Shown: piece by piece, positions 1 to 64,000 of the stretch
How positions within the stretch are numbered: the first letter of the stretch is position 1
Layout of the letters: the number at the start of each line of letters is the position of its first letter
NCBI GenBank assembly: GCA_977017575.1
Contig: CDRNVI010000105.1
Location: 1 to 64,000 of the forward strand
Length of the DNA stretch: 64,000 nt
From: Paramoeba atlantica
Taxonomy: Eukaryota > Protista > Discosea
Direction of reading: 5' to 3'
Position numbers and translations under genes: made by a program
Notes under the pieces: generated by a model
Databases searched by the model: none
Seen by the model: the letters and a program-made list of their open reading frames with translations, nothing else
What the model was told of the DNA's origin: nothing

Positions 1-128
1 CCTGGTAGCTACGGTTGGGTACCCGTGCTCGGGCCGCAAGGCTTCGAGTGCCGTCTTGGAAGGGGGAAGCAAGACAATGAAGGTCGGTGGCTTGAGACTC
101 TACCCTAACGGTGCAGAGCCCTCGGTGT

Positions 129-191
129 CTTCTTCTTCTTCTTCTTCTTCTTCTTCTTCTTCTTCTTCTTCTTCTTCTTCTTCTTCTTCTT

Positions 192-221
<30 letters not shown>
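129..221 (+). repeat. (CTT)31 microsatellite; lacks the TT seen before the tract in all other copies
   Basis: GTGT(CTT)31ATT here versus GTGTCTTTT(CTT)nATT elsewhere. Confidence 0.97.
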
Positions 222-222
<1 letters not shown>

Positions 223-324
223 TTCCCCAGAGTCCTGAAAGCTGGTTTGCAACTCTACTACCGCGTTTAACGAAAAGCCTAAATTGAAATATTATAGCCA
301 AAAATAGCCGATTTTCGGGTAAAA

Positions 325-819
325 ATGGGGTCATTTTTGTGTATTTGTTTTCATTCACGAAATCCGATATTTGCTCGTGGGAAATCACTCGTAGGCATGA
401 ATGAAAGCCTGCCGAACGTATTGGGTAAAGAATGCGACCCCAACCCCAAGAATGGCGACCTAATGTATGATGTGGACGCAAAGCTCAGGTTACTAAAATT
501 CCATTCGTATAATATATATTTGTGCAAGGTAAAGGCGCACATTGGAAACAAATGGAATGAGGAGGCAGATGGTCTAGCACTTTTGGCATCACGAAAAGTG
601 GCACGGGCTCCGACCCAAAAAAGGAGAAAAACAACTGCTAACTCGGAGGATAGTGAGAATTCACAACCGTCATGGTCTTTGAAAGCCTTACTCAAAAGGA
701 AGTCCCTTGGAAATAAGCAAGCACGAGACATTCCATCATCGAAGCGCAAAGCTGAGGCGGAAGGGGTATTTCGAGGGAAGGTTGCGAGAGCTGGAGGTAA
801 TAGGAAACCGTCTAAGTAG
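325..819 (+). CDS. RNase H-like protein, C-terminal half plus basic tail (164-aa ORF; probable last exon starts at 395)
   Basis: KNGDLMYDVDAKL...IYLCKVKAHIGNKWNEEADGLA matches by eye the RNase HI C-terminal pattern (E. coli KNVDLW...WVKGHAGHPENERCDELA, with H124 and D134 equivalents kept). It is followed by a Lys/Arg-rich tail with an NLS-like KRRK. Confidence 0.7.
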   Translation: MGSFLCICFHSRNPIFARGKSLVGMNESLPNVLGKECDPNPKNGDLMYDVDAKLRLLKFHSYNIYLCKVKAHIGNKWNEEADGLALLASRKVARAPTQKRRKTTANSEDSENSQPSWSLKALLKRKSLGNKQARDIPSSKRKAEAEGVFRGKVARAGGNRKPSK

Positions 820-1210
820 GGAGAGAATTGATGGAATTATTTCTTTGCCAACTTAGAATGCCTTGAGGATTATTCATAGGTTATCGGAAAAATATTGTTT
901 GTTTGTACCGTATCAGACACATATAAACTCTGAACGTGGAAGCGATAGATGAAAGCTTTCAAGGTGTAAACATTAAGTTTTTCAACCGACTTTACGTCGG
1001 TCTTTTGGATTGGATATTGGATTGGACCCCAACCACACCATTCTTCCGACCCAAAAAGACCCCTTGAGGTCCGAAAAATACTTTTTCACCTATTTCAGTC
1101 GAAAATGGGTCATTTTGAGTGGCGCACCACGGCTCGAAGAAGAGATACCTTGAGAAACCAAAGGCCGAGAAAGCTAGTATAGGCCCCGAACTATCAAAAT
1201 ACAACAGGGG

Positions 1211-1424
1211 AAAGAATATTGAAAAAATATTTTCTTTGCCAGTTTTTTCGCCAAGTTGAATTTTTTTTCAAAAACATCCGAACTTGGCGGACCCGTCCTG
1301 CGGATACGAGGGGGGGCCACCCCCGGGTAGGGGGCGGAAAATAAGCGCCAACCCCGGCTACCCCTTCTGCGGGTTTTTTTCGAAAAAAAAATTTCAAAAA
1401 AAAAAATCGTGCGGTATGCCCCCC
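1211..1424. other. Cluster of inverted repeats and homopolymer runs in the intergenic spacer (possible regulatory or structural element); in every unit
   Basis: AAAGAATATT/AATATT-TT-CTTT hairpin (1211-1237); CGCCAAGTT/AACTTGGCG (1249-1257/1281-1289); G7 run; GGGTAG/CTACCC; palindrome T7-CG-A7 (1374-1389); A11 run. Function unknown. Confidence 0.55.
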
Positions 1425-1752
1425 TGTGTTCCTCTTTATATTTTCACTGTTTTTGTTCACTCTTTTTTCAATAATCGAGGGTAGAGTGGTAGTTATACAA
1501 CCACCGCAATATAATAATTAAGATATCGCCCAAAGCCCCACCATGAGCGGACAAAGAACCTGCCACTCAAATGCTTGAATTAGCGCTACCCGGCTTCACA
1601 TGCGATAACTGAGTTTCGTTTTGCTCGAGAACTCACGAGATACACCTTGCCAGGGGACCCTCCAGTGTGAAGTGGGTTTCAAATCTTGAACTCATCTTTT
1701 TTGATATTTTCAAAAATATTTACTCAGTCCGCTACTTTTTTAAAATAACAAA

Positions 1753-2514
1753 TTGATGAATTTCGGGCTTCAAGTTTCCAGCCCTCCCTCATGCAAGGTA
1801 TTTGTGGATGGGGTGCCAGATGTTGAAATCGAGGAAAGCGATATTTTCAAACAGAAGTTATGCTTCACGCCAAAACATCTCCAACGATCCTCCGTAATCC
1901 TGTTTTCTTCTCTTTCTCAACCCATAGGAATTTCCACGTCGAGCGGGGACCAATTCGTGTTAGACCCGGAGGGTGGAGCCGTTAACTTTACTTGTGCGAG
2001 CATGTTGAGCATCACGTTTCACAATCTTTTAAAGAAGGAAGCAGAAAGTGTATGTAGAGATGTTCTTGGTCTTTTTCAAGACAATTTTGTTAATCCTTCA
2101 TCTGGGGCCCTTTCATACGACTACGTGAGGAACCAGATTGATCAGAAATACCTTTTTAATGTTTTGAAGTTTCAGAGAATGGTTAAAAATGCAGGCAACC
2201 CATTTTACCAATACCTTGGGAAAGACCTTTGCAGGTGGATAGTTTTGCATTCAAGTTCAAAAAAGCCCAATTTTGGATTTACACGAGGAAAAGAGTATAG
2301 TGATCTCTTAAAATTTTCTGTTAGCCAGATCATGGGGGAAGAAGTTGCGATGAGCGACCTTTATCAGCTGGTAAGGGGTGAGAAAACCTTTGATTTGCTC
2401 CTTTCTTCAAATTTTACTGTGTTGAAAAGGTTTCTTGTGAAATTTAATGCTGAGTTTCTTTGGTTTCAAGATGAGGCTTCAAAAAAGACATTAATTTCCA
2501 CAAATCCCCTTTGA
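1753..2514 (+). CDS. Orphan 253-aa ORF, copy 1 (probably exon 1 of a longer spliced gene; ATG at 1756)
   Basis: Longest ORF in the unit, protein-like composition, intact in all 16 copies. No family recognised. Consensus-like donor CTG|GTAAGG at 2371. Alleles F38, R226. Confidence 0.65.
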   Translation: MMNFGLQVSSPPSCKVFVDGVPDVEIEESDIFKQKLCFTPKHLQRSSVILFSSLSQPIGISTSSGDQFVLDPEGGAVNFTCASMLSITFHNLLKKEAESVCRDVLGLFQDNFVNPSSGALSYDYVRNQIDQKYLFNVLKFQRMVKNAGNPFYQYLGKDLCRWIVLHSSSKKPNFGFTRGKEYSDLLKFSVSQIMGEEVAMSDLYQLVRGEKTFDLLLSSNFTVLKRFLVKFNAEFLWFQDEASKKTLISTNPL

Positions 2515-3764
2515 TTCTTAAAGTTTCCCTACTTTTGTAGACATTTCAAAAAGATGCGAAGGACCCTACTAGAGCACTTAATCATAAACAATTTTGTACA
2601 TAACAAACCCCCAGAGCCACCATCATCAAAAATAATTCTCAAGAATTTCTCCTCATTGATGCAAAACGTCTCTTTTAACGCCTTTTATTTTTGTTTTCGC
2701 ATAGCCGCCCCCCTCTACCACCAATAAACGCATAAACATTTATCAGCCCCAATGCTACCAAGACCCTTCACAGACAGATTTGGAAGTTCCAAGGCCGACG
2801 TCCTCTACCAGTTTTCGCTTTTCCAAGGCGGCACCAACGTTATGTTACCAACACGCTGCTTCGACGACTTGTATGACAACGCGGCCCACCCAAGAGGCTT
2901 AAACCGGGTAAGGGGGCCGGCTCCCTGATGGGAGGAGGGGAAGAAGAATCCAATCCAAAAAGAAGAAGAAGAGAAGAGAACCGGTTCCCTGATGGGAGCG
3001 CCCCTGGCGGCCGTCAGAGTACTGGGCCTAGTCGATTCTCAGCCCAGCCTCTTAGATCGAGGCCGCCGGGAATTATGCGATGAGCGGGTTCGAAACTTTG
3101 ATCCCTGAAGGAAGAAGGAAGAAGGTTGCTCGACTAAATGATGCTTTCCAATGTAGGGAAGTTACTTCGACAAGTGCTTGTGTAGGATCTAGTTGAATCT
3201 TTAGTGTCTCAACGAGGTTCTGCCAATCTTAAAGCAGAGATTTAAGCCGGGCCGAGGGGTCTGGCCTTTATTTGGGTAGCTTCTACAGAGGAAAGCGGTG
3301 TAATTGTAGTTGGAGACGGTGGGCCTTACAACCTGCAGGTTGGGGGTTATATTCCCGATATCGACAAAACTCGCAACCTGCCGGCCTCACTACAAAGGGA
3401 AAGCGACCAGGAGTGCCTTCAAGTCCCACACCCAACCCCAAATCAATCATTCCGGATTGCTCCGGATGGCCACTGGCAAGCCAGACCCTTCACAGAAAGA
3501 TTTGGAAGTTCCGAGGCCGACGTCCTCTATCAGTTTCCGCTTTTCCAAGGCGGCACCAACGTGCTGTTACCAACACGCTGCGTCGACGAACTGTACGTCA
3601 ACACGGCTTACCCAAGAGGTGTAAGCCGGGTAAGGGAGCTCGTTCCCTGAGGGGAGGGTCCGGGACGGTCCTCCGAGTACTGGGCCTAGTCGGTTATTAG
3701 CCCAGCCTCTTAGAGGGAGGCCGCCAGGAATATTTCGATGAGCGGGTTTGAACTCGCCGTCTGA
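1756..3764 (+). CDS. Proposed 6-exon ~442-aa orphan gene (exons 1756-2370, 2541-2595, 2747-2907, 3056-3152, 3280-3629, 3714-3764); recurs in every unit
   Basis: All five introns are GT-AG and phase-compatible, and the spliced frame has no stops. Introns 2908-3055 and 3630-3713 are supported by conserved splice sites in the two internal paralogs; the other three are plausible but not unique. Confidence 0.35.
2761..3094 (+). repeat. Internal diverged duplication, copy A (with a 64-bp insertion)
   Basis: Aligns to 3483-3752 at about 85% identity by hand count. Reads RPFTDRFGSSKADVLYQFSLFQGGTNVMLPTRCFDDLYDNAAHPRGLNR. Present in every unit. Confidence 0.95.
2917..2998 (+). repeat. 18-bp direct repeats (CCGG[C/T]TCCCTGATGGGAG at 2917-2934 and 2981-2998) flanking a 46-bp purine-rich spacer
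   Basis: Read directly from the sequence; paralog B has a single equivalent site. Confidence 0.85.
3483..3752 (+). repeat. Internal diverged duplication, copy B
   Basis: Reads RPFTERFGSSEADVLYQFPLFQGGTNVLLPTRCVDELYVNTAYPRGVSR; paralog of 2761-3094. Confidence 0.95.
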
Positions 3765-4100
3765 GCACCACGTGCTTGAAACTTTGAATTCTTGCTGCTA
3801 CGCCACCGCTCGGAAAAAGTCCGCTAGGAAGAAGGCCTCCCTCTGGAGGAACGACCCGGAACCGCAGAGCCGAACCAGGCTCCAGCGCAGCCGCCGAAAA
3901 TTCATGCTTCTTACGCAAACGAGGCATGAGACACAGCCTACACGATGCAACGGGGTTGGACGCCCGTCCTGGTAGCTACGGTTGGGTACCCGTGCTCGGG
4001 CCGCAAGGCTTCGAGTGCCGTCTTGGAAGGGGGAAGCAAGACAATGAAGGTCGGTGGCTTGAGACTCTACCCTAACGGTGCAGAGCCCTCGGTGTCTTTT

Positions 4101-4157
4101 CTTCTTCTTCTTCTTCTTCTTCTTCTTCTTCTTCTTCTTCTTCTTCTTCTTCTTCTT

Positions 4158-4187
<30 letters not shown>
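4101..4187 (+). repeat. (CTT)29 microsatellite
   Basis: Pure tract; count from the poly-Leu length in the ORF track. Confidence 0.97.
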
Positions 4188-4188
<1 letters not shown>

Positions 4189-4290
4189 TTCCCCAGAGTC
4201 CTGAAAGCTGGTTTGCAACTCTACTACCGCGTTTAACGAAAAGCCTAAATTGAAATATTATAGCCAAAAATAGCCGATTTTCGGGTAAAA

Positions 4291-4785
4291 ATGGGGTCAT
4301 TTTTGTGTATTTGTTTTCATTCACGAAATCCGATATTTGCTCGTGGGAAATCACTCGTAGGCATGAATGAAAGCCTGCCGAACGTATTGGGTAAAGAATG
4401 CGACCCCAACCCCAAGAATGGCGACCTAATGTATGATGTGGACGCAAAGCTCAGGTTACTAAAATTCCATTCGTATAATATATATTTGTGCAAGGTAAAG
4501 GCGCACATTGGAAACAAATGGAATGAGGAGGCAGATGGTCTAGCACTTTTGGCATCACGAAAAGTGGCACGGGCTCCGACCCAAAAAAGGAGAAAAACAA
4601 CTGCTAACTCGGAGGATAGTGAGAATTCACAACCGTCATGGTCTTTGAAAGCCTTACTCAAAAGGAAGTCCCTTGGAAATAAGCAAGCACGAGACATTCC
4701 ATCATCGAAGCGCAAAGCTGAGGCGGAAGGGGTATTTCGAGGGAAGGTTGCGAGAGCTGGAGGTAATAGGAAACCGTCTAAGTAG
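4291..4785 (+). CDS. RNase H-like C-terminal ORF, copy 2
   Basis: Same translation as 325..819. Confidence 0.7.
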   Translation: MGSFLCICFHSRNPIFARGKSLVGMNESLPNVLGKECDPNPKNGDLMYDVDAKLRLLKFHSYNIYLCKVKAHIGNKWNEEADGLALLASRKVARAPTQKRRKTTANSEDSENSQPSWSLKALLKRKSLGNKQARDIPSSKRKAEAEGVFRGKVARAGGNRKPSK

Positions 4786-5718
4786 GGAGAGAATTGATGG
4801 AATTATTTCTTTGCCAACTTAGAATGCCTTGAGGATTATTCATAGGTTATCGGAAAAATATTGTTTGTTTGTACCGTATCAGACACATATAAACTCTGAA
4901 CGTGGAAGCGATAGATGAAAGCTTTCAAGGTGTAAACATTAAGTTTTTCAACCGACTTTACGTCGGTCTTTTGGATTGGATATTGGATTGGACCCCAACC
5001 ACACCATTCTTCCGACCCAAAAAGACCCCTTGAGGTCCGAAAAATACTTTTTCACCTATTTCAGTCGAAAATGGGTCATTTTGAGTGGCGCACCACGGCT
5101 CGAAGAAGAGATACCTTGAGAAACCAAAGGCCGAGAAAGCTAGTATAGGCCCCGAACTATCAAAATACAACAGGGGAAAGAATATTGAAAAAATATTTTC
5201 TTTGCCAGTTTTTTCGCCAAGTTGAATTTTTTTTCAAAAACATCCGAACTTGGCGGACCCGTCCTGCGGATACGAGGGGGGGCCACCCCCGGGTAGGGGG
5301 CGGAAAATAAGCGCCAACCCCGGCTACCCCTTCTGCGGGTTTTTTTCGAAAAAAAAATTTCAAAAAAAAAAATCGTGCGGTATGCCCCCCTGTGTTCCTC
5401 TTTATATTTTCACTGTTTTTGTTCACTCTTTTTTCAATAATCGAGGGTAGAGTGGTAGTTATACAACCACCGCAATATAATAATTAAGATATCGCCCAAA
5501 GCCCCACCATGAGCGGACAAAGAACCTGCCACTCAAATGCTTGAATTAGCGCTACCCGGCTTCACATGCGATAACTGAGTTTCGTTTTGCTCGAGAACTC
5601 ACGAGATACACCTTGCCAGGGGACCCTCCAGTGTGAAGTGGGTTTCAAATCTTGAACTCATCTTTTTTGATATTTTCAAAAATATTTACTCAGTCCGCTA
5701 CTTTTTTAAAATAACAAA

Positions 5719-6480
5719 TTGATGAATTTCGGGCTTCAAGTTTCCAGCCCTCCCTCATGCAAGGTATTTGTGGATGGGGTGCCAGATGTTGAAATCGAGG
5801 AAAGCGATATTTTCAAACAGAAGTTATGCTTCACGCCAAAACATCTCCAACGATCCTCCGTAATCCTGTTTTCTTCTCTTTCTCAACCCATAGGAATTTC
5901 CACGTCGAGCGGGGACCAATTCGTGTTAGACCCGGAGGGTGGAGCCGTTAACTTTACTTGTGCGAGCATGTTGAGCATCACGTTTCACAATCTTTTAAAG
6001 AAGGAAGCAGAAAGTGTATGTAGAGATGTTCTTGGTCTTTTTCAAGACAATTTTGTTAATCCTTCATCTGGGGCCCTTTCATACGACTACGTGAGGAACC
6101 AGATTGATCAGAAATACCTTTTTAATGTTTTGAAGTTTCAGAGAATGGTTAAAAATGCAGGCAACCCATTTTACCAATACCTTGGGAAAGACCTTTGCAG
6201 GTGGATAGTTTTGCATTCAAGTTCAAAAAAGCCCAATTTTGGATTTACACGAGGAAAAGAGTATAGTGATCTCTTAAAATTTTCTGTTAGCCAGATCATG
6301 GGGGAAGAAGTTGCGATGAGCGACCTTTATCAGCTGGTAAGGGGTGAGAAAACCTTTGATTTGCTCCTTTCTTCAAATTTTACTGTGTTGAAAAGGTTTC
6401 TTGTGAAATTTAATGCTGAGTTTCTTTGGTTTCAAGATGAGGCTTCAAAAAAGACATTAATTTCCACAAATCCCCTTTGA
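5719..6480 (+). CDS. Orphan 253-aa ORF, copy 2
   Basis: Same translation as copy 1. Confidence 0.65.
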   Translation: MMNFGLQVSSPPSCKVFVDGVPDVEIEESDIFKQKLCFTPKHLQRSSVILFSSLSQPIGISTSSGDQFVLDPEGGAVNFTCASMLSITFHNLLKKEAESVCRDVLGLFQDNFVNPSSGALSYDYVRNQIDQKYLFNVLKFQRMVKNAGNPFYQYLGKDLCRWIVLHSSSKKPNFGFTRGKEYSDLLKFSVSQIMGEEVAMSDLYQLVRGEKTFDLLLSSNFTVLKRFLVKFNAEFLWFQDEASKKTLISTNPL

Positions 6481-8066
6481 TTCTTAAAGTTTCCCTACTT
6501 TTGTAGACATTTCAAAAAGATGCGAAGGACCCTACTAGAGCACTTAATCATAAACAATTTTGTACATAACAAACCCCCAGAGCCACCATCATCAAAAATA
6601 ATTCTCAAGAATTTCTCCTCATTGATGCAAAACGTCTCTTTTAACGCCTTTTATTTTTGTTTTCGCATAGCCGCCCCCCTCTACCACCAATAAACGCATA
6701 AACATTTATCAGCCCCAATGCTACCAAGACCCTTCACAGACAGATTTGGAAGTTCCAAGGCCGACGTCCTCTACCAGTTTTCGCTTTTCCAAGGCGGCAC
6801 CAACGTTATGTTACCAACACGCTGCTTCGACGACTTGTATGACAACGCGGCCCACCCAAGAGGCTTAAACCGGGTAAGGGGGCCGGCTCCCTGATGGGAG
6901 GAGGGGAAGAAGAATCCAATCCAAAAAGAAGAAGAAGAGAAGAGAACCGGTTCCCTGATGGGAGCGCCCCTGGCGGCCGTCAGAGTACTGGGCCTAGTCG
7001 ATTCTCAGCCCAGCCTCTTAGATCGAGGCCGCCGGGAATTATGCGATGAGCGGGTTCGAAACTTTGATCCCTGAAGGAAGAAGGAAGAAGGTTGCTCGAC
7101 TAAATGATGCTTTCCAATGTAGGGAAGTTACTTCGACAAGTGCTTGTGTAGGATCTAGTTGAATCTTTAGTGTCTCAACGAGGTTCTGCCAATCTTAAAG
7201 CAGAGATTTAAGCCGGGCCGAGGGGTCTGGCCTTTATTTGGGTAGCTTCTACAGAGGAAAGCGGTGTAATTGTAGTTGGAGACGGTGGGCCTTACAACCT
7301 GCAGGTTGGGGGTTATATTCCCGATATCGACAAAACTCGCAACCTGCCGGCCTCACTACAAAGGGAAAGCGACCAGGAGTGCCTTCAAGTCCCACACCCA
7401 ACCCCAAATCAATCATTCCGGATTGCTCCGGATGGCCACTGGCAAGCCAGACCCTTCACAGAAAGATTTGGAAGTTCCGAGGCCGACGTCCTCTATCAGT
7501 TTCCGCTTTTCCAAGGCGGCACCAACGTGCTGTTACCAACACGCTGCGTCGACGAACTGTACGTCAACACGGCTTACCCAAGAGGTGTAAGCCGGGTAAG
7601 GGAGCTCGTTCCCTGAGGGGAGGGTCCGGGACGGTCCTCCGAGTACTGGGCCTAGTCGGTTATTAGCCCAGCCTCTTAGAGGGAGGCCGCCAGGAATATT
7701 TCGATGAGCGGGTTTGAACTCGCCGTCTGAGCACCACGTGCTTGAAACTTTGAATTCTTGCTGCTACGCCACCGCTCGGAAAAAGTCCGCTAGGAAGAAG
7801 GCCTCCCTCTGGAGGAACGACCCGGAACCGCAGAGCCGAACCAGGCTCCAGCGCAGCCGCCGAAAATTCATGCTTCTTACGCAAACGAGGCATGAGACAC
7901 AGCCTACACGATGCAACGGGGTTGGACGCCCGTCCTGGTAGCTACGGTTGGGTACCCGTGCTCGGGCCGCAAGGCTTCGAGTGCCGTCTTGGAAGGGGGA
8001 AGCAAGACAATGAAGGTCGGTGGCTTGAGACTCTACCCTAACGGTGCAGAGCCCTCGGTGTCTTTT

Positions 8067-8102
8067 CTTCTTCTTCTTCTTCTTCTTCTTCTTCTTCTTC
8101 TT

Positions 8103-8132
<30 letters not shown>
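8067..8132 (+). repeat. (CTT)22 microsatellite
   Basis: Pure tract. Confidence 0.97.
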
Positions 8133-8133
<1 letters not shown>

Positions 8134-8235
8134 TTCCCCAGAGTCCTGAAAGCTGGTTTGCAACTCTACTACCGCGTTTAACGAAAAGCCTAAATTGAAA
8201 TATTATAGCCAAAAATAGCCGATTTTCGGGTAAAA

Positions 8236-8730
8236 ATGGGGTCATTTTTGTGTATTTGTTTTCATTCACGAAATCCGATATTTGCTCGTGGGAAATCACT
8301 CGTAGGCATGAATGAAAGCCTGCCGAACGTATTGGGTAAAGAATGCGACCCCAACCCCAAGAATGGCGACCTAATGTATGATGTGGACGCAAAGCTCAGG
8401 TTACTAAAATTCCATTCGTATAATATATATTTGTGCAAGGTAAAGGCGCACATTGGAAACAAATGGAATGAGGAGGCAGATGGTCTAGCACTTTTGGCAT
8501 CACGAAAAGTGGCACGGGCTCCGACCCAAAAAAGGAGAAAAACAACTGCTAACTCGGAGGATAGTGAGAATTCACAACCGTCATGGTCTTTGAAAGCCTT
8601 ACTCAAAAGGAAGTCCCTTGGAAATAAGCAAGCACGAGACATTCCATCATCGAAGCGCAAAGCTGAGGCGGAAGGGGTATTTCGAGGGAAGGTTGCGAGA
8701 GCTGGAGGTAATAGGAAACCGTCTAAGTAG
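8236..8730 (+). CDS. RNase H-like C-terminal ORF, copy 3
   Basis: Same translation as 325..819. Confidence 0.7.
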   Translation: MGSFLCICFHSRNPIFARGKSLVGMNESLPNVLGKECDPNPKNGDLMYDVDAKLRLLKFHSYNIYLCKVKAHIGNKWNEEADGLALLASRKVARAPTQKRRKTTANSEDSENSQPSWSLKALLKRKSLGNKQARDIPSSKRKAEAEGVFRGKVARAGGNRKPSK

Positions 8731-9663
8731 GGAGAGAATTGATGGAATTATTTATTTGCCAACTTAGAATGCCTTGAGGATTATTCATAGGTTATCGGAA
8801 AAATATTGTTTGTTTGTACCGTATCAGACACATATAAACTCTGAACGTGGAAGCGATAGATGAAAGCTTTCAAGGTGTAAACATTAAGTTTTTCAACCGA
8901 CTTTACGTCGGTCTTTTGGATTGGATATTGGATTGGACCCCAACCACACCATTCTTCCGACCCAAAAAGACCCCTTGAGGTCCGAAAAATACTTTTTCAC
9001 CTATTTCAGTCGAAAATGGGTCATTTTGAGTGGCGCACCACGGCTCGAAGAAGAGATACCTTGAGAAACCAAAGGCCGAGAAAGCTAGTATAGGCCCCGA
9101 ACTATCAAAATACAACAGGGGAAAGAATATTGAAAAAATATTTTCTTTGCCAGTTTTTTCGCCAAGTTGAATTTTTTTTCAAAAACATCCGAACTTGGCG
9201 GACCCGTCCTGCGGATACGAGGGGGGGCCACCCCCGGGTAGGGGGCGGAAAATAAGCGCCAACCCCGGCTACCCCTTCTGCGGGTTTTTTTCGAAAAAAA
9301 AATTTCAAAAAAAAAAATCGTGCGGTATGCCCCCCTGTGTTCCTCTTTATATTTTCACTGTTTTTGTTCACTCTTTTTTCAATAATCGAGGGTAGAGCGG
9401 TAGTTATACAACCACCGCAATATAATAATTAAGATATCGCCCAAAGCCCCACCATGAGCGGACAAAGAACCTGCCACTCAAATGCTTGAATTAGCGCTAC
9501 CCGGCTTCACATGCGATAACTGAGTTTCGTTTTGCTCGAGAACTCACGAGATACACCTTGCCAGGGGACCCTCCAGTGTGAAGTGGGTTTCAAATCTTGA
9601 ACTCATCTTTTTTGATATTTTCAAAAATATTTACTCAGTCCGCTACTTTTTTAAAATAACAAA

Positions 9664-12080: not shown

Positions 12081-12081
<1 letters not shown>

Positions 12082-51753: not shown

Positions 51754-52248
51754 ATGGGGTCATTTTTGTGTATTTGTTTTCATTCACGAAATCCGATATT
51801 TGCTCGTGGGAAATCACTCGTAGGCATGAATGAAAGCCTGCCGAACGTATTGGGTAAAGAATGCGACCCCAACCCCAAGAATGGCGACCTAATGTATGAT
51901 GTGGACGCAAAGCTCAGGTTACTAAAATTCCATTCGTATAATATATATTTGTGCAAGGTAAAGGCGCACATTGGAAACAAATGGAATGAGGAGGCAGATG
52001 GTCTAGCACTTTTGGCATCACGAAAAGTGGCACGGGCTCCGACCCAAAAAAGGAGAAAAACAACTGCTAACTCGGAGGATAGTGAGAATTCACAACCGTC
52101 ATGGTCTTTGAAAGCCTTACTCAAAAGGAAGTCCCTTGGAAATAAGCAAGCACGAGACATTCCATCATCGAAGCGCGAAGCTGAGGCGGAAGGGGTATTT
52201 CGAGGGAAGGTTGCGAGAGCTGGAGGTAATAGGAAACCGTCTAAGTAG
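51754..52248 (+). CDS. RNase H-like C-terminal ORF, copy 14
   Basis: K->E allele. Confidence 0.7.
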   Translation: MGSFLCICFHSRNPIFARGKSLVGMNESLPNVLGKECDPNPKNGDLMYDVDAKLRLLKFHSYNIYLCKVKAHIGNKWNEEADGLALLASRKVARAPTQKRRKTTANSEDSENSQPSWSLKALLKRKSLGNKQARDIPSSKREAEAEGVFRGKVARAGGNRKPSK

Positions 52249-53943: not shown

Positions 53944-55529
53944 TTCTTAAAGTTTCCCTACTTTTGTAGACATTTCAAAAAGATGCGAAGGACCCTAATA
54001 GAGCACTTAATCATAAACAATTTTGTACATAACAAACCCCCAGAGCCACCATCATCAAAAATAATTCTCAAGAATTTCTCCTCATTGATGCAAAACGTCT
54101 CTTTTAACGCCTTTTATTTTTGTTTTCGCATAGCCGCCCCCCTCTACCACCAATAAACGCATAAACATTTATCAGCCCCAATGCTACCAAGACCCTTCAC
54201 AGACAGATTTGGAAGTTCCAAGGCCGACGTCCTCTACCAGTTTTCGCTTTTCCAAGGCGGCACCAACGTTATGTTACCAACACGCTGCTTCGACGACTTG
54301 TATGACAACGCGGCCCACCCAAGAGGCTTAAACCGGGTAAGGGGGCCGGCTCCCTGATGGGAGGAGGGGAAGAAGAATCCAATCCAAAAAGAAGAAGAAG
54401 AGAAGAGAACCGGTTCCCTGATGGGAGCGCCCCTGGCGGCCGTCAGAGTACTGGGCCTAGTCGATTCTCAGCCCAGCCTCTTAGATCGAGGCCGCCGGGA
54501 ATTATGCGATGAGCGGGTTCGAAACTTTGATCCCTGAAGGAAGAAGGAAGAAGGTTGCTCGACTAAATGATGCTTTCCAATGTAGGGAAGTTACTTCGAC
54601 AAGTGCTTGTGTAGGCTCTAGTTGAATCTTTAGTGTCTCAACGAGGTTCTGCCAATCTTAAAGCAGAGATTTAAGCCGGGCCGAGGGGTCTGGCCTTTAT
54701 TTGGGTAGCTTCTACAGAGGAAAGCGGTGTAATTGTAGTTGGAGACGGTGGGCCTTACAACCTGCAGGTTGGGGGTTATATCCCCGATATCGACAAAACG
54801 CGCAACCTGCCGGCCTCACTACAAAGGGATAGCGACCAGGAGTGCCTTCAAGTCCCACACCCAACCCCAAATCAATCATTCCGGATTGCTCCGGATGGCC
54901 ACTGGCAAGCCAGACCCTTCACAGAAAGATTTGGAAGTTCCGAGGCCGACGTCCTCTATCAGTTTCCGCTTTTCCAAGGCGGCACCAACGTGCTGTTACC
55001 AACACGCTGCGTCGACGAACTGTACGTCAACACGGCTTACCCAAGAGGTGTAAGCCGGGTAAGGGAGCTCGTTCCCTGAGGGGAGGGTCCGGGACGGTCC
55101 TCCGAGTACTGGGCCTAGTCGGTTATTAGCCCAGCCTCTTAGAGGGAGGCCGCCAGGAATATTTCGATGAGCGGGTTTGAACTCGCCGTCTGAGCACCAT
55201 GTGCTTGAAACTTTGAATTCTTGCTGCTACGCAACCGCTCGGAAAAAGTCCGCTAGGAAGAAGGCCTCCCTCTGGAGGAACGACCCGGAACCGCAGAGCC
55301 GAACCAGGCTCCAGCGCAGCCGCCGAAAATTCATGCTGCTTACGCAAACGAGGCATGAGACACAGCCTACACGATGCAACGGGGTTGGACGCCCGTCCTG
55401 GTAGCTACGGTTGGGTACCCGTGCTCGGGCCGCAAGGCTTCGAGTGCCGTCTTGGAAGGGGGCAGCAAGACAATGAAGGTCGGTGGCTTGAGACTCTACC
55501 CTAACGGTGCAGAGCCCTCGGTGTCTTTT

Positions 55530-55577
55530 CTTCTTCTTCTTCTTCTTCTTCTTCTTCTTCTTCTTCTTCTTCTTCTT

Positions 55578-55607
<30 letters not shown>
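55530..55607 (+). repeat. (CTT)26 microsatellite
   Basis: Pure tract. Confidence 0.97.
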
Positions 55608-55608
<1 letters not shown>

Positions 55609-55710
55609 TTCCCCAGAGTCCTGAAAGCTGGTTTGCAACTCTACTACCGCGTTTAACGAAAAGCCTAAATTGAAATATTATAGCCAAAAATAGCCGATTT
55701 TCGGGTAAAA

Positions 55711-56205
55711 ATGGGGTCATTTTTGTGTATTTGTTTTCATTCACGAAATCCGATATTTGCTCGTGGGAAATCACTCGTAGGCATGAATGAAAGCCTGCCG
55801 AACGTATTGGGTAAAGAATGCGACCCCAACCCCAAGAATGGCGACCTAATGTATGATGTGGACGCAAAGCTCAGGTTACTAAAATTCCATTCGTATAATA
55901 TATATTTGTGCAAGGTAAAGGCGCACATTGGAAACAAATGGAATGAGGAGGCAGATGGTCTAGCACTTTTGGCATCACGAAAAGTGGCACGGGCTCCGAC
56001 CCAAAAAAGGAGAAAAACAACTGCTAACTCGGAGGATAGTGAGAATTCACAACCGTCATGGTCTTTGAAAGCCTTACTCAAAAGGAAGTCCCTTGGAAAT
56101 AAGCAAGCACGAGACATTCCATCATCGAAGCGCGAAGCTGAGGCGGAAGGGGTATTTCGAGGGAAGGTTGCGAGAGCTGGAGGTAATAGGAAACCGTCTA
56201 AGTAG
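55711..56205 (+). CDS. RNase H-like C-terminal ORF, copy 15
   Basis: K->E allele. Confidence 0.7.
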   Translation: MGSFLCICFHSRNPIFARGKSLVGMNESLPNVLGKECDPNPKNGDLMYDVDAKLRLLKFHSYNIYLCKVKAHIGNKWNEEADGLALLASRKVARAPTQKRRKTTANSEDSENSQPSWSLKALLKRKSLGNKQARDIPSSKREAEAEGVFRGKVARAGGNRKPSK

Positions 56206-57138
56206 GGAGAGAATTGATGGAATTATTTCTTTGCCAACTTAGAATGCCTTGAGGATTATTCATAGGTTATCGGAAAAATATTGTTTGTTTGTACCGTATC
56301 AGACACATATAAACTCTGAACGTGGAAGCGATAGATGAAAGCTTTCAAGGTGTAAACATTAAGTTTTTCAACCGACTTTACGTCGGTCTTTTGGATTGGA
56401 TATTGGATTGGACCCCAACCACACCATTCTTCCGACCCAAAAAGACCCCTTGAGGTCCGAAAAATACTTTTTCACCTATTTCAGTCGAAAATGGGTCATT
56501 TTGAGTGGCGCACCACGGCTCGAAGAAGAGATACCTTGAGAAACCAAAGGCCGAGAAAGCTAGTATAGGCCCCGAACTATCAAAATACAACAGGGGAAAG
56601 AATATTGAAAAAATATTTTCTTTGCCAGTTTTTTCGCCAAGTTGAATTTTTTTTCAAAAACATCCGAACTTGGCGGACCCGTCCTGCGGATACGAGGGGG
56701 GGCCACCCCCGGGTAGGGGGCGGAAAATAAGCGCCAACCCCGGCTACCCATTCTGCGGGTTTTTTTCGAAAAAAAAATTTCAAAAAAAAAAATCGTGCGG
56801 TATGCCCCCCTGTGTTCCTCTTTATATTTTCACTGTTTTTGTTCACTCTTTTTTCAATAATCGAGGGTAGAGTGGTAGTTATACAACCACCGCAATATAA
56901 TAATTAAGATATCGCCCAAAGCCCCACCATGAGCGGACAAAGAACCTGCCACTCAAATGCTTGAATTAGCGCTACCCGGCTTCACATGCGATAACTGAGT
57001 TTCGTTTTGCTCGAGAACTCACGAGATACACCTTGCCAGGGGACCCTCCAGTGTGAAGTGGGTTTCAAATCTTGAACTCATCTTTTTTGATATTTTCAAA
57101 AATATTTACTCAGTCCGCTACTTTTTTAAAATAACAAA

Positions 57139-57900
57139 TTGATGAATTTCGGGCTTCAAGTTTCCAGCCCTCCCTCATGCAAGGTATTTGTGGATGGGGT
57201 GCCAGATGTTGAAATCGAGGAAAGCGATATTTTCAAACAGAAGTTATGCGTCACGCCAAAACATCTCCAACGATCCTCCGTAATCCTGTTTTCTTCTCTT
57301 TCTCAAACCATAGGAATTTCCACGTCGAGCGGGGACCAATTCGTGTTAGACCCGGAGGGTGGAGCCGTTAACTTTACTTGTGCGAGCATGTTGAGCATCA
57401 CGTTTCACAATCTTTTAAAGAAGGAAGCAGAAAGTGTATGTAGAGATGTTCTTGGTCTTTTTCAAGACAATTTTGTTAATCCTTCATCTGGGGCCCTTTC
57501 ATACGACTACGTGAGGAACCAGATTGATCAGAAATACCTTTTTAATGTTTTGAAGTTTCAGAGAATGGTTAAAAATGCAGGCAACCCATTTTACCAATAC
57601 CTTGGGAAAGACCTTTGCAGGTGGATAGTTTTGCATTCAAGTTCAAAAAAGCCCAATTTTGGATTTACACGAGGAAAAGAGTATAGTGATCTCTTAAAAT
57701 TTTCTGTTAGCCAGATCATGGGGGAAGAAGTTGCGATGAGCGACCTTTATCAGCTGGTAAGGGGTGAGAAAACCTTTGATTTGCTCCTTTCTTCAAATTT
57801 TACTGTGTTGAAAAAGTTTCTTGTGAAATTTAATGCTGAGTTTCTTTGGTTTCAAGATGAGGCTTCAAAAAAGACATTAATTTCCACAAATCCCCTTTGA
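57139..57900 (+). CDS. Orphan 253-aa ORF, copy 15
   Basis: V38, K226, P57T. Confidence 0.65.
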   Translation: MMNFGLQVSSPPSCKVFVDGVPDVEIEESDIFKQKLCVTPKHLQRSSVILFSSLSQTIGISTSSGDQFVLDPEGGAVNFTCASMLSITFHNLLKKEAESVCRDVLGLFQDNFVNPSSGALSYDYVRNQIDQKYLFNVLKFQRMVKNAGNPFYQYLGKDLCRWIVLHSSSKKPNFGFTRGKEYSDLLKFSVSQIMGEEVAMSDLYQLVRGEKTFDLLLSSNFTVLKKFLVKFNAEFLWFQDEASKKTLISTNPL

Positions 57901-59486
57901 TTCTTAAAGTTTCCCTACTTTTGTAGACATTTCAAAAAGATGCGAAGGACCCTACTAGAGAACTTAATCATAAACAATTTTGTACATAACAAACCCCCAG
58001 AGCCACCATCATCAAAAATAATTCTCAAGAATTTCTCCTCATTGATGCAAAACGTCTCTTTTAACGCCTTTTATTTTTGTTTTCGCATAGCCGCCCCCCT
58101 CTACCACCAATAAACGCATAAACATTTATCAGCCCCAATGCTACCAAGACCCTTCACAGACAGATTTGGAAGTTCCAAGGCCGACGTCCTCTACCAGTTT
58201 TCGCTTTTCCAAGGCGGCACCAACGTTATGTTACCAACACGCTGCTTCGACGACTTGTATGACAACGCGGCCCACCCAAGAGGCTTAAACCGGGTAAGGG
58301 GGCCGGCTCCCTGATGGGAGGAGGGGAAGAAGAATCCAATCCAAAAAGAAGAAGAAGAGAAGAGAACCGGTTCCCTGATGGGAGCGCCCCTGGCGGCCGT
58401 CAGAGTACTGGGCCTAGTCGATTCTCAGCCCAGCCTCTTAGATCGAGGCCGCCGGGAATTATGCGATGAGCGGGTTCGAAACTTTGATCCCTGAAGGAAG
58501 AAGGAAGAAGGTTGCTCGACTAAATGATGCTTTCCAATGTAGGGAAGTTACTTCGACAAGTGCTTGTGTAGGCTCTAGTTGAATCTTTAGTGTCTCAACG
58601 AGGTTCTGCCAATCTTAAAGCAGAGATTTAAGCCGGGCCGAGGGGTCTGGCCTTTATTTGGGTAGCTTCTACAGAGGAAAGCGGTGTAATTGTAGTTGGA
58701 GACGGTGGGCCTTACAACCTGCAGGTTGGGGGTTATATTCCCGATATCGACAAAACTCGCAACCTGCCGGCCTCACTACAAAGGGAAAGCGACCAGGAGT
58801 GCCTTCAAGTCCCACACCCAACCCCAAATCAATCATTCCGGATTGCTCCGGATGGCCACTGGCAAGCCAGACCCTTCACAGAAAGATTTGGAAGTTCCGA
58901 GGCCGACGTCCTCTATCAGTTTCCGCTTTTCCAAGGCGGCACCAACGTGCTGTTACCAACACGCTGCGTCGACGAACTGTACGTCAACACGGCTTACCCA
59001 AGAGGTGTAAGCCGGGTAAGGGAGCTCGTTCCCTGAGGGGAGGGTCCGGGACGGTCCTCCGAGTACTGGGCCTAGTCGGTTATTAGCCCAGCCTCTTAGA
59101 GGGAGGCCGCCAGGAATATTTCGATGAGCGGGTTTGAACTCGCCGTCTGAGCACCATGTGCTTGAAACTTTGAATTCTTGCTGCTACGCAACCGCTCGGA
59201 AAAAGTCCGCTAGGAAGAAGGCCTCCCTCTGGAGGAACGACCCGGAACCGCAGAGCCGAACCAGGCTCCAGCGCAGCCGCCGAAAATTCATGCTGCTTAC
59301 GCAAACGAGGCATGAGACACAGCCTACACGATGCAACGGGGTTGGACGCCCGTCCTGGTAGCTACGGTTGGGTACCCGTGCTCGGGCCGCAAGGCTTCGA
59401 GTGCCGTCTTGGAAGGGGGCAGCAAGACAATGAAGGTCGGTGGCTTGAGACTCTACCCTAACGGTGCAGAGCCCTCGGTGTCTTTT

Positions 59487-59537
59487 CTTCTTCTTCTTCT
59501 TCTTCTTCTTCTTCTTCTTCTTCTTCTTCTTCTTCTT

Positions 59538-59567
<30 letters not shown>
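59487..59567 (+). repeat. (CTT)27 microsatellite
   Basis: Pure tract. Confidence 0.97.
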
Positions 59568-59568
<1 letters not shown>

Positions 59569-59670
59569 TTCCCCAGAGTCCTGAAAGCTGGTTTGCAACT
59601 CTACTACCGCGTTTAACGAAAAGCCTAAATTGAAATATTATAGCCAAAAATAGCCGATTTTCGGGTAAAA

Positions 59671-60165
59671 ATGGGGTCATTTTTGTGTATTTGTTTTCAT
59701 TCACGAAATCCGATATTTGCTCGTGGGAAATCACTCGTAGGCATGAATGAAAGCCTGCCGAACGTATTGGGTAAAGAATGCGACCCCAACCCCAAGAATG
59801 GCGACCTAATGTATGATGTGGACGCAAAGCTCAGGTTACTAAAATTCCATTCGTATAATATATATTTGTGCAAGGTAAAGGCGCACATTGGAAACAAATG
59901 GAATGAGGAGGCAGATGGTCTAGCACTTTTGGCATCACGAAAAGTGGCACGGGCTCCGACCCAAAAAAGGAGAAAAACAACTGCTAACTCGGAGGATAGT
60001 GAGAATTCACAACCGTCATGGTCTTTGAAAGCCTTACTCAAAAGGAAGTCCCTTGGAAATAAGCAAGCACGAGACATTCCATCATCGAAGCGCGAAGCTG
60101 AGGCGGAAGGGGTATTTCGAGGGAAGGTTGCGAGAGCTGGAGGTAATAGGAAACCGTCTAAGTAG
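59671..60165 (+). CDS. RNase H-like C-terminal ORF, copy 16
   Basis: K->E allele. Confidence 0.7.
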   Translation: MGSFLCICFHSRNPIFARGKSLVGMNESLPNVLGKECDPNPKNGDLMYDVDAKLRLLKFHSYNIYLCKVKAHIGNKWNEEADGLALLASRKVARAPTQKRRKTTANSEDSENSQPSWSLKALLKRKSLGNKQARDIPSSKREAEAEGVFRGKVARAGGNRKPSK

Positions 60166-61098
60166 GGAGAGAATTGATGGAATTATTTCTTTGCCAACTT
60201 AGAATGCCTTGAGGATTATTCATAGGTTATCGGAAAAATATTGTTTGTTTGTACCGTATCAGACACATATAAACTCTGAACGTGGAAGCGATAGATGAAA
60301 GCTTTCAAGGTGTAAACATTAAGTTTTTCAACCGACTTTACGTCGGTCTTTTGGATTGGATATTGGATTGGACCCCAACCACACCATTCTTCCGACCCAA
60401 AAAGACCCCTTGAGGTCCGAAAAATACTTTTTCACCTATTTCAGTCGAAAATGGGTCATTTTGAGTGGCGCACCACGGCTCGAAGAAGAGATACCTTGAG
60501 AAACCAAAGGCCGAGAAAGCTAGTATAGGCCCCGAACTATCAAAATACAACAGGGGAAAGAATATTGAAAAAATATTTTCTTTGCCAGTTTTTTCGCCAA
60601 GTTGAATTTTTTTTCAAAAACATCCGAACTTGGCGGACCCGTCCTGCGGATACGAGGGGGGGCCACCCCCGGGTAGGGGGCGGAAAATAAGCGCCAACCC
60701 CGGCTACCCATTCTGCGGGTTTTTTTCGAAAAAAAAATTTCAAAAAAAAAAATCGTGCGGTATGCCCCCCTGTGTTCCTCTTTATATTTTCACTGTTTTT
60801 GTTCACTCTTTTTTCAATAATCGAGGGTAGAGTGGTAGTTATACAACCACCGCAATATAATAATTAAGATATCGCCCAAAGCCCCACCATGAGCGGACAA
60901 AGAACCTGCCACTCAAATGCTTGAATTAGCGCTACCCGGCTTCACATGCGATAACTGAGTTTCGTTTTGCTCGAGAACTCACGAGATACACCTTGCCAGG
61001 GGACCCTCCAGTGTGAAGTGGGTTTCAAATCTTGAACTCATCTTTTTTGATATTTTCAAAAATATTTACTCAGTCCGCTACTTTTTTAAAATAACAAA

Positions 61099-61860
61099 TT
61101 GATGAATTTCGGGCTTCAAGTTTCCAGCCCTCCCTCATGCAAGGTATTTGTGGATGGGGTGCCAGATGTTGAAATCGAGGAAAGCGATATTTTCAAACAG
61201 AAGTTATGCGTCACGCCAAAACATCTCCAACGATCCTCCGTAATCCTGTTTTCTTCTCTTTCTCAAACCATAGGAATTTCCACGTCGAGCGGGGACCAAT
61301 TCGTGTTAGACCCGGAGGGTGGAGCCGTTAACTTTACTTGTGCGAGCATGTTGAGCATCACGTTTCACAATCTTTTAAAGAAGGAAGCAGAAAGTGTATG
61401 TAGAGATGTTCTTGGTCTTTTTCAAGACAATTTTGTTAATCCTTCATCTGGGGCCCTTTCATACGACTACGTGAGGAACCAGATTGATCAGAAATACCTT
61501 TTTAATGTTTTGAAGTTTCAGAGAATGGTTAAAAATGCAGGCAACCCATTTTACCAATACCTTGGGAAAGACCTTTGCAGGTGGATAGTTTTGCATTCAA
61601 GTTCAAAAAAGCCCAATTTTGGATTTACACGAGGAAAAGAGTATAGTGATCTCTTAAAATTTTCTGTTAGCCAGATCATGGGGGAAGAAGTTGCGATGAG
61701 CGACCTTTATCAGCTGGTAAGGGGTGAGAAAACCTTTGATTTGCTCCTTTCTTCAAATTTTACTGTGTTGAAAAAGTTTCTTGTGAAATTTAATGCTGAG
61801 TTTCTTTGGTTTCAAGATGAGGCTTCAAAAAAGACATTAATTTCCACAAATCCCCTTTGA
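61099..61860 (+). CDS. Orphan 253-aa ORF, copy 16
   Basis: V38, K226, P57T. Confidence 0.65.
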   Translation: MMNFGLQVSSPPSCKVFVDGVPDVEIEESDIFKQKLCVTPKHLQRSSVILFSSLSQTIGISTSSGDQFVLDPEGGAVNFTCASMLSITFHNLLKKEAESVCRDVLGLFQDNFVNPSSGALSYDYVRNQIDQKYLFNVLKFQRMVKNAGNPFYQYLGKDLCRWIVLHSSSKKPNFGFTRGKEYSDLLKFSVSQIMGEEVAMSDLYQLVRGEKTFDLLLSSNFTVLKKFLVKFNAEFLWFQDEASKKTLISTNPL

Positions 61861-63446
61861 TTCTTAAAGTTTCCCTACTTTTGTAGACATTTCAAAAAGA
61901 TGCGAAGGACCCTACTAGAGAACTTAATCATAAACAATTTTGTACATAACAAACCCCCAGAGCCACCATCATCAAAAATAATTCTCAAGAATTTCTCCTC
62001 ATTGATGCAAAACGTCTCTTTTAACGCCTTTTATTTTTGTTTTCGCATAGCCGCCCCCCTCTACCACCAATAAACGCATAAACATTTATCAGCCCCAATG
62101 CTACCAAGACCCTTCACAGACAGATTTGGAAGTTCCAAGGCCGACGTCCTCTACCAGTTTTCGCTTTTCCAAGGCGGCACCAACGTTATGTTACCAACAC
62201 GCTGCTTCGACGACTTGTATGACAACGCGGCCCACCCAAGAGGCTTAAACCGGGTAAGGGGGCCGGCTCCCTGATGGGAGGAGGGGAAGAAGAATCCAAT
62301 CCAAAAAGAAGAAGAAGAGAAGAGAACCGGTTCCCTGATGGGAGCGCCCCTGGCGGCCGTCAGAGTACTGGGCCTAGTCGATTCTCAGCCCAGCCTCTTA
62401 GATCGAGGCCGCCGGGAATTATGCGATGAGCGGGTTCGAAACTTTGATCCCTGAAGGAAGAAGGAAGAAGGTTGCTCGACTAAATGATGCTTTCCAATGT
62501 AGGGAAGTTACTTCGACAAGTGCTTGTGTAGGCTCTAGTTGAATCTTTAGTGTCTCAACGAGGTTCTGCCAATCTTAAAGCAGAGATTTAAGCCGGGCCG
62601 AGGGGTCTGGCCTTTATTTGGGTAGCTTCTACAGAGGAAAGCGGTGTAATTGTAGTTGGAGACGGTGGGCCTTACAACCTGCAGGTTGGGGGTTATATTC
62701 CCGATATCGACAAAACTCGCAACCTGCCGGCCTCACTACAAAGGGAAAGCGACCAGGAGTGCCTTCAAGTCCCACACCCAACCCCAAATCAATCATTCCG
62801 GATTGCTCCGGATGGCCACTGGCAAGCCAGACCCTTCACAGAAAGATTTGGAAGTTCCGAGGCCGACGTCCTCTATCAGTTTCCGCTTTTCCAAGGCGGC
62901 ACCAACGTGCTGTTACCAACACGCTGCGTCGACGAACTGTACGTCAACACGGCTTACCCAAGAGGTGTAAGCCGGGTAAGGGAGCTCGTTCCCTGAGGGG
63001 AGGGTCTGGGACGGTCCTCCGAGTACTGGGCCTAGTCGGTTATTAGCCCAGCCTCTTAGAGGGAGGCCGCCAGGAATATTTCGATGAGCGGGTTTGAACT
63101 CGCCGTCTGAGCACCACGTGCTTGAAACTTTGAATTCTTGCTGCTACTCCACCGCTCGGAAAAAGTCCGCTAGGAAGAAGGCCTCCCTCTGGAGGAACGA
63201 CCCGGAACCGCAGAGCCGAACCAGGCTCCAGCGCAGCCGCCGAAAATTCATGCTGCTTACGCAAACGAGGCATGAGACACAGCCTACACGATGCAACGGG
63301 GTTGGGCGCCCGTCCTGGTAGCTACGGTTGGGTACCCGTGCTCGGGCCGCAAGGCTTCGAGTGCCGTCTTGGAAGGGGGCAGCAAGACAATGAAGGTCGG
63401 TGGCTTGAGACTCTACCCTAACGGTGCAGAGCCCTCGGTGTCTTTT

Positions 63447-63476
63447 CTTCTTCTTCTTCTTCTTCTTCTTCTTCTT

Positions 63477-63506
<30 letters not shown>
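63447..63506 (+). repeat. (CTT)20 microsatellite (shortest)
   Basis: Pure tract. Confidence 0.97.
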
Positions 63507-63507
<1 letters not shown>

Positions 63508-63609
63508 TTCCCCAGAGTCCTGAAAGCTGGTTTGCAACTCTACTACCGCGTTTAACGAAAAGCCTAAATTGAAATATTATAGCCAAAAATAGCCGATTTT
63601 CGGGTAAAA

Positions 63610-64000
63610 ATGGGGTCATTTTTGTGTATTTGTTTTCATTCACGAAATCCGATATTTGCTCGTGGGAAATCACTCGTAGGCATGAATGAAAGCCTGCCGA
63701 ACGTATTGGGTAAAGAATGCGACCCCAACCCCAAGAATGGCGACCTAATGTATGATGTGGACGCAAAGCTCAGGTTACTAAAATTCCATTCGTATAATAT
63801 ATATTTGTGCAAGGTAAAGGCGCACATTGGAAACAAATGGAATGAGGAGGCAGATGGTCTAGCACTTTTGGCATCACGAAAAGTGGCACGGGCTCCGACC
63901 CAAAAAAGGAGAAAAACAACTGCTAACTCGGAGGATAGTGAGAATTCACAACCGTCATGGTCTTTGAAAGCCTTACTCAAAAGGAAGTCCCTTGGAAATA
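63610..64000 (+). CDS. RNase H-like C-terminal ORF, copy 17 (cut by window end)
   Basis: Same sequence from ATG 63610, including the KVKAHIGNKWNEEAD motif. Confidence 0.65.
   Translation, partial: MGSFLCICFHSRNPIFARGKSLVGMNESLPNVLGKECDPNPKNGDLMYDVDAKLRLLKFHSYNIYLCKVKAHIGNKWNEEADGLALLASRKVARAPTQKRRKTTANSEDSENSQPSWSLKALLKRKSLGN

Follow-up and report, generated by a model that had tools for sequence, protein, structure and literature searches.

The window analysed here is a stretch of 64,000 nucleotides, positions 1 to 64,000 of contig CDRNVI010000105.1 (C105) of the Paramoeba atlantica assembly GCA_977017575.1; genome-wide searches covered the whole assembly (45.7 Mb, 248 contigs). The window is made of 16 full and two partial units of 3.94–3.99 kb in tandem, and each full unit contains one intact open reading frame (ORF) of 252 codons, called the array gene below, and a long spacer. 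An earlier note on this DNA had described at least 16 near-identical tandem units of 3.95 kb and had proposed that each carries two genes, the first an orphan with an internally duplicated module and the second related to RNase HI. The array was confirmed; of the two proposed genes, the first is retained here and the second is not. Unit coordinates refer throughout to the first unit of the window (Table 1).

An exact 30-mer lying just 3' of a (TCT)n microsatellite was used as an anchor. It was found at 17 places in the window, with 3939–3993 bp from one to the next, and base composition cycled with a period equal to the unit spacing. Within the window, the (TCT)n tract was the sole part of the unit that varied in length (Tandem Repeats Finder). 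The one-strand layout of the units was confirmed, as was the previous statement that the window lacks reverse transcriptase (RT), transposase and integrase domains.

When the unit was searched against the host assembly, the array was found to extend over C105 into a second contig (C10), about twice the extent first seen. C105 (100,945 bp) is array from base 1 to 99,789, and C10 starts with 7.5 further units on the minus strand (C10:1-29409), which gives a whole array of at least 130 kb. At least 32 intact copies of the array gene are present on C105 and C10, all on the array strand; two further copies are incomplete, one being 5'-truncated where the array ends on C10 and the other a partial copy on a third contig, C58. 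Thirty full units of C105 and C10 had a mean identity of 99.75% over 3923 ungapped columns, with 59 variable sites, 29 of which were common to two or more units. The array ends of C105 and C10 probably belong together, because the C10 units share the variant states of the first four C105 units.

At the other end of C105, the final unit is broken off within the first 20 bp of a retroposon copy related to short interspersed nuclear elements (SINEs; copy B, described below). The array is capped there (C105:99789-100945) by 1.16 kb of nearly perfect (AGAGGAAGAA)n, a 10-mer satellite that reaches the contig end. On C10, the array is bounded by a 1.7-kb minisatellite with an 18-nt period, beyond which unique genes are found. 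In coding-strand order, the region thus comprises a gene cluster, the minisatellite, a truncated unit, at least 32 units and the 10-mer satellite.

C105 consists of array and terminal simple repeat only, as might be expected if the array were an assembly artefact or an extrachromosomal amplicon, in which case long reads would have run through a 3.95-kb circle or a linear amplicon. However, the 59 variable sites are shared block-wise among units, the (TCT)n tracts differ in length and three units carry an extra insertion; none of this would be expected from a single circle that had been read repeatedly. Furthermore, on C10 the array is connected to unique genes of a chromosome, and an independent assembly has several copies per contig of 16–20 kb. 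An origin of this kind is considered very unlikely, a linear episome being still conceivable.

The array gene and its protein family

An exhaustive phmmer search with the array gene product returned 17 proteins at E ≤ 0.001. Sixteen of these are distant relatives, 30–37% identical over the matched stretches and mostly full-length (231–301 amino acids (aa), with one of 131 aa), and the remaining match is a 96%-identical fragment from the gene's own cluster. One distant relative comes from the free-living prokinetoplastid Papus ankaliazontas and the others from environmental or SRA-derived assemblies. None of the 16 bears an informative name, and the family was not found in the sources that hold trypanosomatid proteomes. 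The family alignment contains the motifs NPSxGAL, GKD...VVLHS..KK and SNFTxLKKFLxKxNxxFxWFQD. Compared with a profile built from 15 aligned relatives, from which the array ORF was excluded, the array ORF scored 173 bits (E = 3.6e-55). Of 44 positions at which at least 11 of these 15 relatives agree, it retains 37. In view of the 16 homologues and of the profile score, the label of orphan was wrong. The array copies are the family's only representatives in the genome, and neither stop codons nor frameshifts were found in the 32 full copies, in the copies of the second assembly or in those of the MMETSP strain.

A word-based protein search with the array gene product recovered only the gene's own 90% cluster; with the family alignment, four already-known members were among the matches listed. 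The 90% cluster includes a full-length entry of 252 aa derived from an MMETSP transcript, and several of its members lie together on each of the 16–20 kb contigs of the independent assembly, held in ENA. These entries indicate transcription of the gene and, in a second data set, a tandem arrangement of it. The kinetoplastid data of MMETSP include Neobodo designis and the Perkinsela of paramoebae (PMC4870792).

A structure predicted by AlphaFold2 with the family alignment had a mean predicted local distance difference test score of 86. In this model, a beta-sandwich (approximately residues 12–90) is followed by two helix-helix(-helix)-hairpin modules. The best Foldseek matches were tandem winged-helix proteins, namely ESCRT-II and STK19 at the top (both E ~1e-3), then Cdt1 and MAGE/Nse. 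When the two modules were compared separately with VIA-align, residues 90–170 and residues 172–252 each matched winged-helix domains with Z values of 8–9; whole-chain TM-scores against tandem winged-helix proteins were just 0.21–0.25, and for the N-terminal beta-sandwich alone no match was obtained.

Like ESCRT-II, STK19, Cdt1, MAGE/Nse3, cullin WHB and LOTUS proteins, the array gene product is thus predicted to contain two consecutive winged helices (residues 90–252), but no relation to such proteins was found at the sequence level. Pfam gave no match at E 0.1 for 16 family members (PF04157 was unmatched; Vps25, PF05871, was not searched separately), and searches of the ESM Atlas (best score 0.75), of PDB sequences and of PDB profiles with the 252-aa ORF returned nothing above chance. 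A six-frame search of the genome gave no match to EAP30 of ESCRT-II (PF04157), which is uninformative, as divergence or an incomplete assembly are possible.

By homology and by the predicted model, the intact 252-aa ORF belongs to a small unnamed family with a beta-sandwich and two winged helices. A shared winged-helix fold, as modelled here, would not give the function of the protein. This is a first sighting of a family with this predicted architecture, which is so far represented by prokinetoplastid and environmental sequences, and here by 32 copies.

Host and genomic setting

The sequence CAGTTTCTGTACTTTGTTG, which we take to be the 3' core of the kinetoplastid spliced leader, occurred 11 times in the genome, versus 0 occurrences of the reversed control. 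This count confirmed the lead given by the pattern, namely that the host is a kinetoplastid. Beyond the C10 minisatellite are six to seven consecutive intronless genes (WD40, ENTH, RING, AAA and others), spaced 240–535 bp apart and all on the minus strand, like the array on that contig. Clusters of this type give polycistronic transcripts in kinetoplastids; the genes have no promoters of their own, and dosage is usually raised by tandem arrays (PMC1855330).

The array consists of head-to-tail repeats with one intact bona fide gene each, on the coding strand of the surrounding cluster. Because it lies downstream of an intronless one-direction cluster and on the same strand, the array would be transcribed polycistronically with these genes. 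Each copy of the array gene would then be released by trans-splicing and polyadenylation, and the main effect of copy number would be to multiply the dose of the winged-helix protein. The 220 nt located 5' of the ORF contain short pyrimidine runs and AG sites that resemble those found 5' of the neighbouring single-copy genes, and are compatible with a putative trans-splice acceptor.

Trypanosomatid tandem gene arrays, for example in Trypanosoma brucei, share several of these features: they are made of near-identical head-to-tail copies on the coding strand of a one-direction cluster, they are homogenised by concerted evolution, and a gain in dosage is expected where genes are without promoters of their own (PMC1855330). 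The array described here differs from them by its 3.2-kb spacer, which is four times the gene length and largely retroposon debris, and in that its gene family is uncharacterised and its expression level and processing sites are presumed.

Retroposon insertions in the spacer

Spacer accounts for four fifths of the unit; roughly half of this spacer is identified transposon debris, and the microsatellite comes on top. Positions 446–1024 (579 bp) have 98% identical dispersed copies on many contigs, upstream of which ORFs with an endonuclease, an RT and a complete RNase H domain are found in that order. The segment is bounded by a 10-bp direct repeat, GACCCCAACC, at 436–445 and 1025–1034 (read from the sequence). 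Homology to an element with apurinic endonuclease (APE) and RT, 5' truncation, a 3' tail and a target-site duplication (TSD) were all observed. Because of the truncation, the (TTGGA)-type tail and the 10-bp TSD, the segment is, on these sequence features, a 5'-truncated, dead-on-arrival insertion of a long interspersed nuclear element (LINE).

The order APE-RT-RNase H is that of the ingi/L1Tc and I-type clades. The full-length genomic relatives of the segment resemble the RNase H-bearing retrotransposons devoid of long terminal repeats (non-LTR) in this order, and 5' truncation, a simple-repeat tail and a TSD are as expected of target-primed reverse transcription; unlike in such elements, the array copy is limited to the last 579 bp.

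The proposed RNase HI-like gene corresponds to an open frame (325–819) that runs from the spacer into this fragment. Its residues 42–164 are 98% identical to residues 637–759, the final 123 aa, of a LINE RT-RNase H protein of 759 aa in which the RNase H domain is formed by residues 540–681. The match of the frame to the RNase H profile (PF00075) had an E value of 0.011 and a score of 16.3 bits (cut-off, 25.8) and was restricted to profile positions 109–137 of 141. About 45 of the approximately 140 RNase H residues are kept, which correspond to the last third of the domain, and catalytic residues appear to be substituted because only this third is present. The frame does not qualify as an RNase H (PF00075) domain protein, being incomplete, below the cut-off and preceded, up to residue 42, by unrelated spacer; its product would be unable to be an enzyme or a complete fold. 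When all five ORFs of the unit were submitted to Pfam, each as a single unjoined frame, this sub-threshold RNase H tail was the sole match. The ATG at 3945, which had been proposed as the start of the second gene, opens a frame that reads the (TCT)n tract as poly-leucine.

The duplication noted earlier is real, positions 2761–3094 and 3438–3807 being 83–87% identical, but it does not constitute a protein module: 2761–3094 (copy A) and 3438–3812 (copy B) are two opposite-strand copies of one dispersed retroposon of about 375 bp. Alignment with five other copies showed that the right end is constant and that the left end bears a (TTTGGA)-type or T-rich tail, which places the SINE-like element on the minus strand. 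Its head contains A-box-like and B-box-like motifs, and ARAGORN made a tRNA-like call there at relaxed thresholds only, no tRNA being called in the unit with default settings. On C58, a SINE-like copy interrupts a paralogue of the unit and is flanked by a 7-bp duplicated target. The constant 5' end, the dispersed copies, the tail that resembles that of the LINE and the TSD on C58 would be expected of a tRNA-derived SINE, whereas the tRNA-like head is weak; the element may be such a SINE. Judged by these features, the duplicated module is a SINE-like retroposon that inserted twice at different times, copy A being the older one.

The earlier note had interpreted the unit as a selfish or dosage-selected cassette, in which an orphan repeat-module effector would be accompanied by a catalytically dead partner with an RNase H fold, both produced by splicing. 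Two open frames do occur on one strand of every unit, and one of them has the weak RNase H profile match. However, this frame arose when 41 codons of spacer came by chance to precede the final 123 aa of a LINE ORF, and a TSD flanks it. The module consists of antisense retroposon sequence that also occurs elsewhere in the genome, and the main ORF has homologues. Spliced products are implausible and the spliced gene models unfounded, as the host is a kinetoplastid with a spliced leader and intronless genes. The finding that both ORFs are fragments of a transposon had been named in advance as evidence against the cassette, and this is what was found for the second gene (a 5'-truncated LINE with a TSD) and for the module (SINE-like debris). 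With one gene per unit, no effector-plus-partner pair is left, and the chance that the unit is such a cassette is considered negligible. A false lead is thereby removed: there is neither a new selfish two-gene cassette nor a repurposed RNase H fold. Copy number may be selected for dosage, as the same proposal had it, which fits kinetoplastid arrays (PMC1855330), but nothing points to selfishness or drive.

The rest of the spacer is heterogeneous. The repeat family of 1035–1511 had more than 1000 first-look candidates in the genome, and forms a tandem-like series with a spacing of about 935 bp at C21:734601-739493. The spacer on the two sides of the microsatellite (3808–4127 and 227–445) has a copy on C58 that is 94–96% identical and in which (TCT)n is nearly absent. 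Positions 1512–1755, 2515–2760 and 3095–3437 are confined to the array, except that 1512–1755 is also present on C58; they are taken as the presumed flanks of the gene itself. An Rfam search of two units at E values up to 1 gave only chance-level matches to archaeal small nucleolar RNAs.

Table 1. Features of the window and of its first unit.
Feature	Position	Strand	Basis or content
Tandem array	1–64000	+	Anchor spacing and whole-genome matches
(TCT)n microsatellite, 23.7–41.7 copies per unit; only long polypyrimidine tract on the gene strand	128–225	+	
Spacer, continuous with 3808–4127 across the microsatellite	227–445	+	Copy on C58
Chance frame of 164 codons (earlier 'RNase H' ORF)	325–819	+	Codons 1–41, spacer; codons 42–164, C-terminus of LINE ORF2
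3' remnant of a non-LTR retrotransposon of APE-RT-RNase H order, 5'-truncated, (TTGGA)-type tail	446–1024	+	
Copy of a dispersed repeat family	1035–1511	.	84–87% identical copies on many contigs
Presumed 5' flank of the gene itself	1512–1755	+	Present only in array and on C58
Array gene, the real gene of the unit, 252 aa	1756–2514	+	Homologues, predicted fold, MMETSP transcript
Older SINE-like copy A, truncated, 64-bp internal insertion	2761–3094	-	
Younger SINE-like copy B, element of ~375 bp	3438–3812	-	tRNA-like head at right end, (TTTGGA)-type tail at left end
Spurious ORF from ATG 3945, (TCT)n read as poly-Leu	3945–4253	+	

Amplification, homogenisation and selection

All spacer insertions occupy identical sites in every unit and, for this reason, most likely predate the amplification: the retroposons would have inserted first, and the unit would have been amplified later. 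A different situation was observed beyond the window, where a 414-bp retro-insertion with a (TTGGA)n tail and a 13-bp TSD (TTAGAATGCCTTG) is present inside the LINE fragment of C105 units 17, 20 and 21 only (approximately 64138–64551, 76480–76893 and 80861–81274). From its distribution, with the same site and the same TSD in three units, this insertion is a later event than the amplification and has since been copied between units. Retrotransposition into the array and shuffling of units therefore went on after the unit was amplified.

Adjacent C105 units differed at 6.3 sites on average and units at least five apart at about 11, and difference increased with unit distance (Spearman rho 0.25, p 2e-5). 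A similarity that falls with distance is the mark left by unequal exchange or conversion acting locally. Such exchanges or conversions among units may have amplified the unit and may keep it homogeneous. The array is a clean example of a kinetoplastid gene array with a long spacer of dated retroposon insertions, which provides an internal clock for amplification and homogenisation.

These results lead us to regard the window as, probably, the middle of a kinetoplastid tandem array of one winged-helix gene with a transposon-padded spacer. Several observations weigh against this interpretation. With respect to the gene, the Cys/His positions common in the family are lost in the array ORF (CHCY to FYQY, and HSHCKK to HSSSKK), and about one third of the units encode R at the otherwise invariant K225. 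The ORF contains nine of the 59 variable sites, a density equal to that of the spacer (binomial p 0.51). All nine within-array ORF variants are nonsynonymous, and so are the nine nucleotide differences between the array ORF and the partial copy on C58, one of which coincides with an array polymorphism. The distinct recent substitutions in the ORF are therefore 17, all nonsynonymous, for which P was about 0.016 under neutrality with the observed spectrum, neutrality tests being low in power at 99.75% identity. Most of the 17 are transversions (window 1852–2494 and each unit). In conclusion, long-term constraint on the ORF is clear and there is no sign of recent purifying selection; the changes fit relaxed selection after amplification and positive selection alike. 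With respect to expression and setting, the transcript is known solely as a protein entry, the trans-splice and poly(A) sites of the gene are predicted, the 3.2-kb spacer far exceeds the 240–535 bp between neighbouring genes, and the array is located in repeat-rich DNA beside satellites.

A rival account is a neutral macrosatellite. In this view, unequal exchange close to the end of a chromosome multiplied a piece of repeat-rich DNA in which the gene lay by accident, and the copies of the gene are passengers, under relaxed constraint and beginning to decay. A variant density in the ORF equal to that in the spacer, 17 nonsynonymous changes of 17, the lost Cys/His positions and the K225 to R change all fit this proposal, as do a unit made up largely of spacer and transposon debris, the minisatellite and 10-mer satellite on either side of the array, and truncated copies that adjoin related minisatellites on C10 and C58. 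On the other hand, decay has left no stop codon or frameshift in any of the 32 full copies, in the second assembly or in the MMETSP strain; 37 of the 44 conserved positions are kept, the predicted fold is confident and a transcript exists. In addition, no family member occurs elsewhere in the genome, so the working copies would be those of the array if the family matters. At 99.75% identity, moreover, the copies are too young for decay to show, which leaves the neutrality tests with little power. Taken together, passive amplification of this kind appears unlikely, and is nonetheless the alternative that we take most seriously.

The human D4Z4 macrosatellite is formed of 3.3-kb units, each with a DUX4 ORF. 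Like the array described here, it combines, in a kilobase-scale unit, one ORF and repeat-derived sequence, and reaches tens of copies close to the end of a chromosome, where it is homogenised by unequal exchange. It differs in lineage and in the transcription system, and the heterochromatic silencing and retrogene origin of D4Z4 are points of comparison for which there is no counterpart evidence in this array.

Within the preferred interpretation of a kinetoplastid gene array, the amplified winged-helix gene might be evolving under positive or dosage selection rather than drifting, which we consider rather improbable. Because the array holds the sole copies of the family, because 17 of 17 recent changes are nonsynonymous and because the array lies at a repeat-rich edge still hit by retroposons, the gene could mark a fast-evolving factor that binds nucleic acid or chromatin, for example one that engages the cell's own retroelements or chromosome ends. 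If dose or the all-nonsynonymous variation proves to be selected, the family would merit a functional look.

Related minisatellites with an 18-nt period adjoin truncated copies of the array gene on both C10 and C58. In the stretch extracted from C10 (2397–4136), the minisatellite precedes a copy that begins at codon 81, and in that extracted from C58 (7242–8083), it comes after a copy whose last codon is 187; about 320 bp of the gene lie in the overlap between the two breakpoints. On C58, the minisatellite and the partial unit are directly adjoined by three bacterial-looking genes in a row, 46–64 bp apart on the minus strand (extracted stretch, 3551–7195). From inspection of their translations by eye, these would encode a 2-isopropylmalate synthase-like protein, then the small and large subunits of isopropylmalate dehydratase. 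The same contig also has a match to the spliced leader, and its bacterial-looking genes could result from gene transfer, from a chimeric contig or from contamination.

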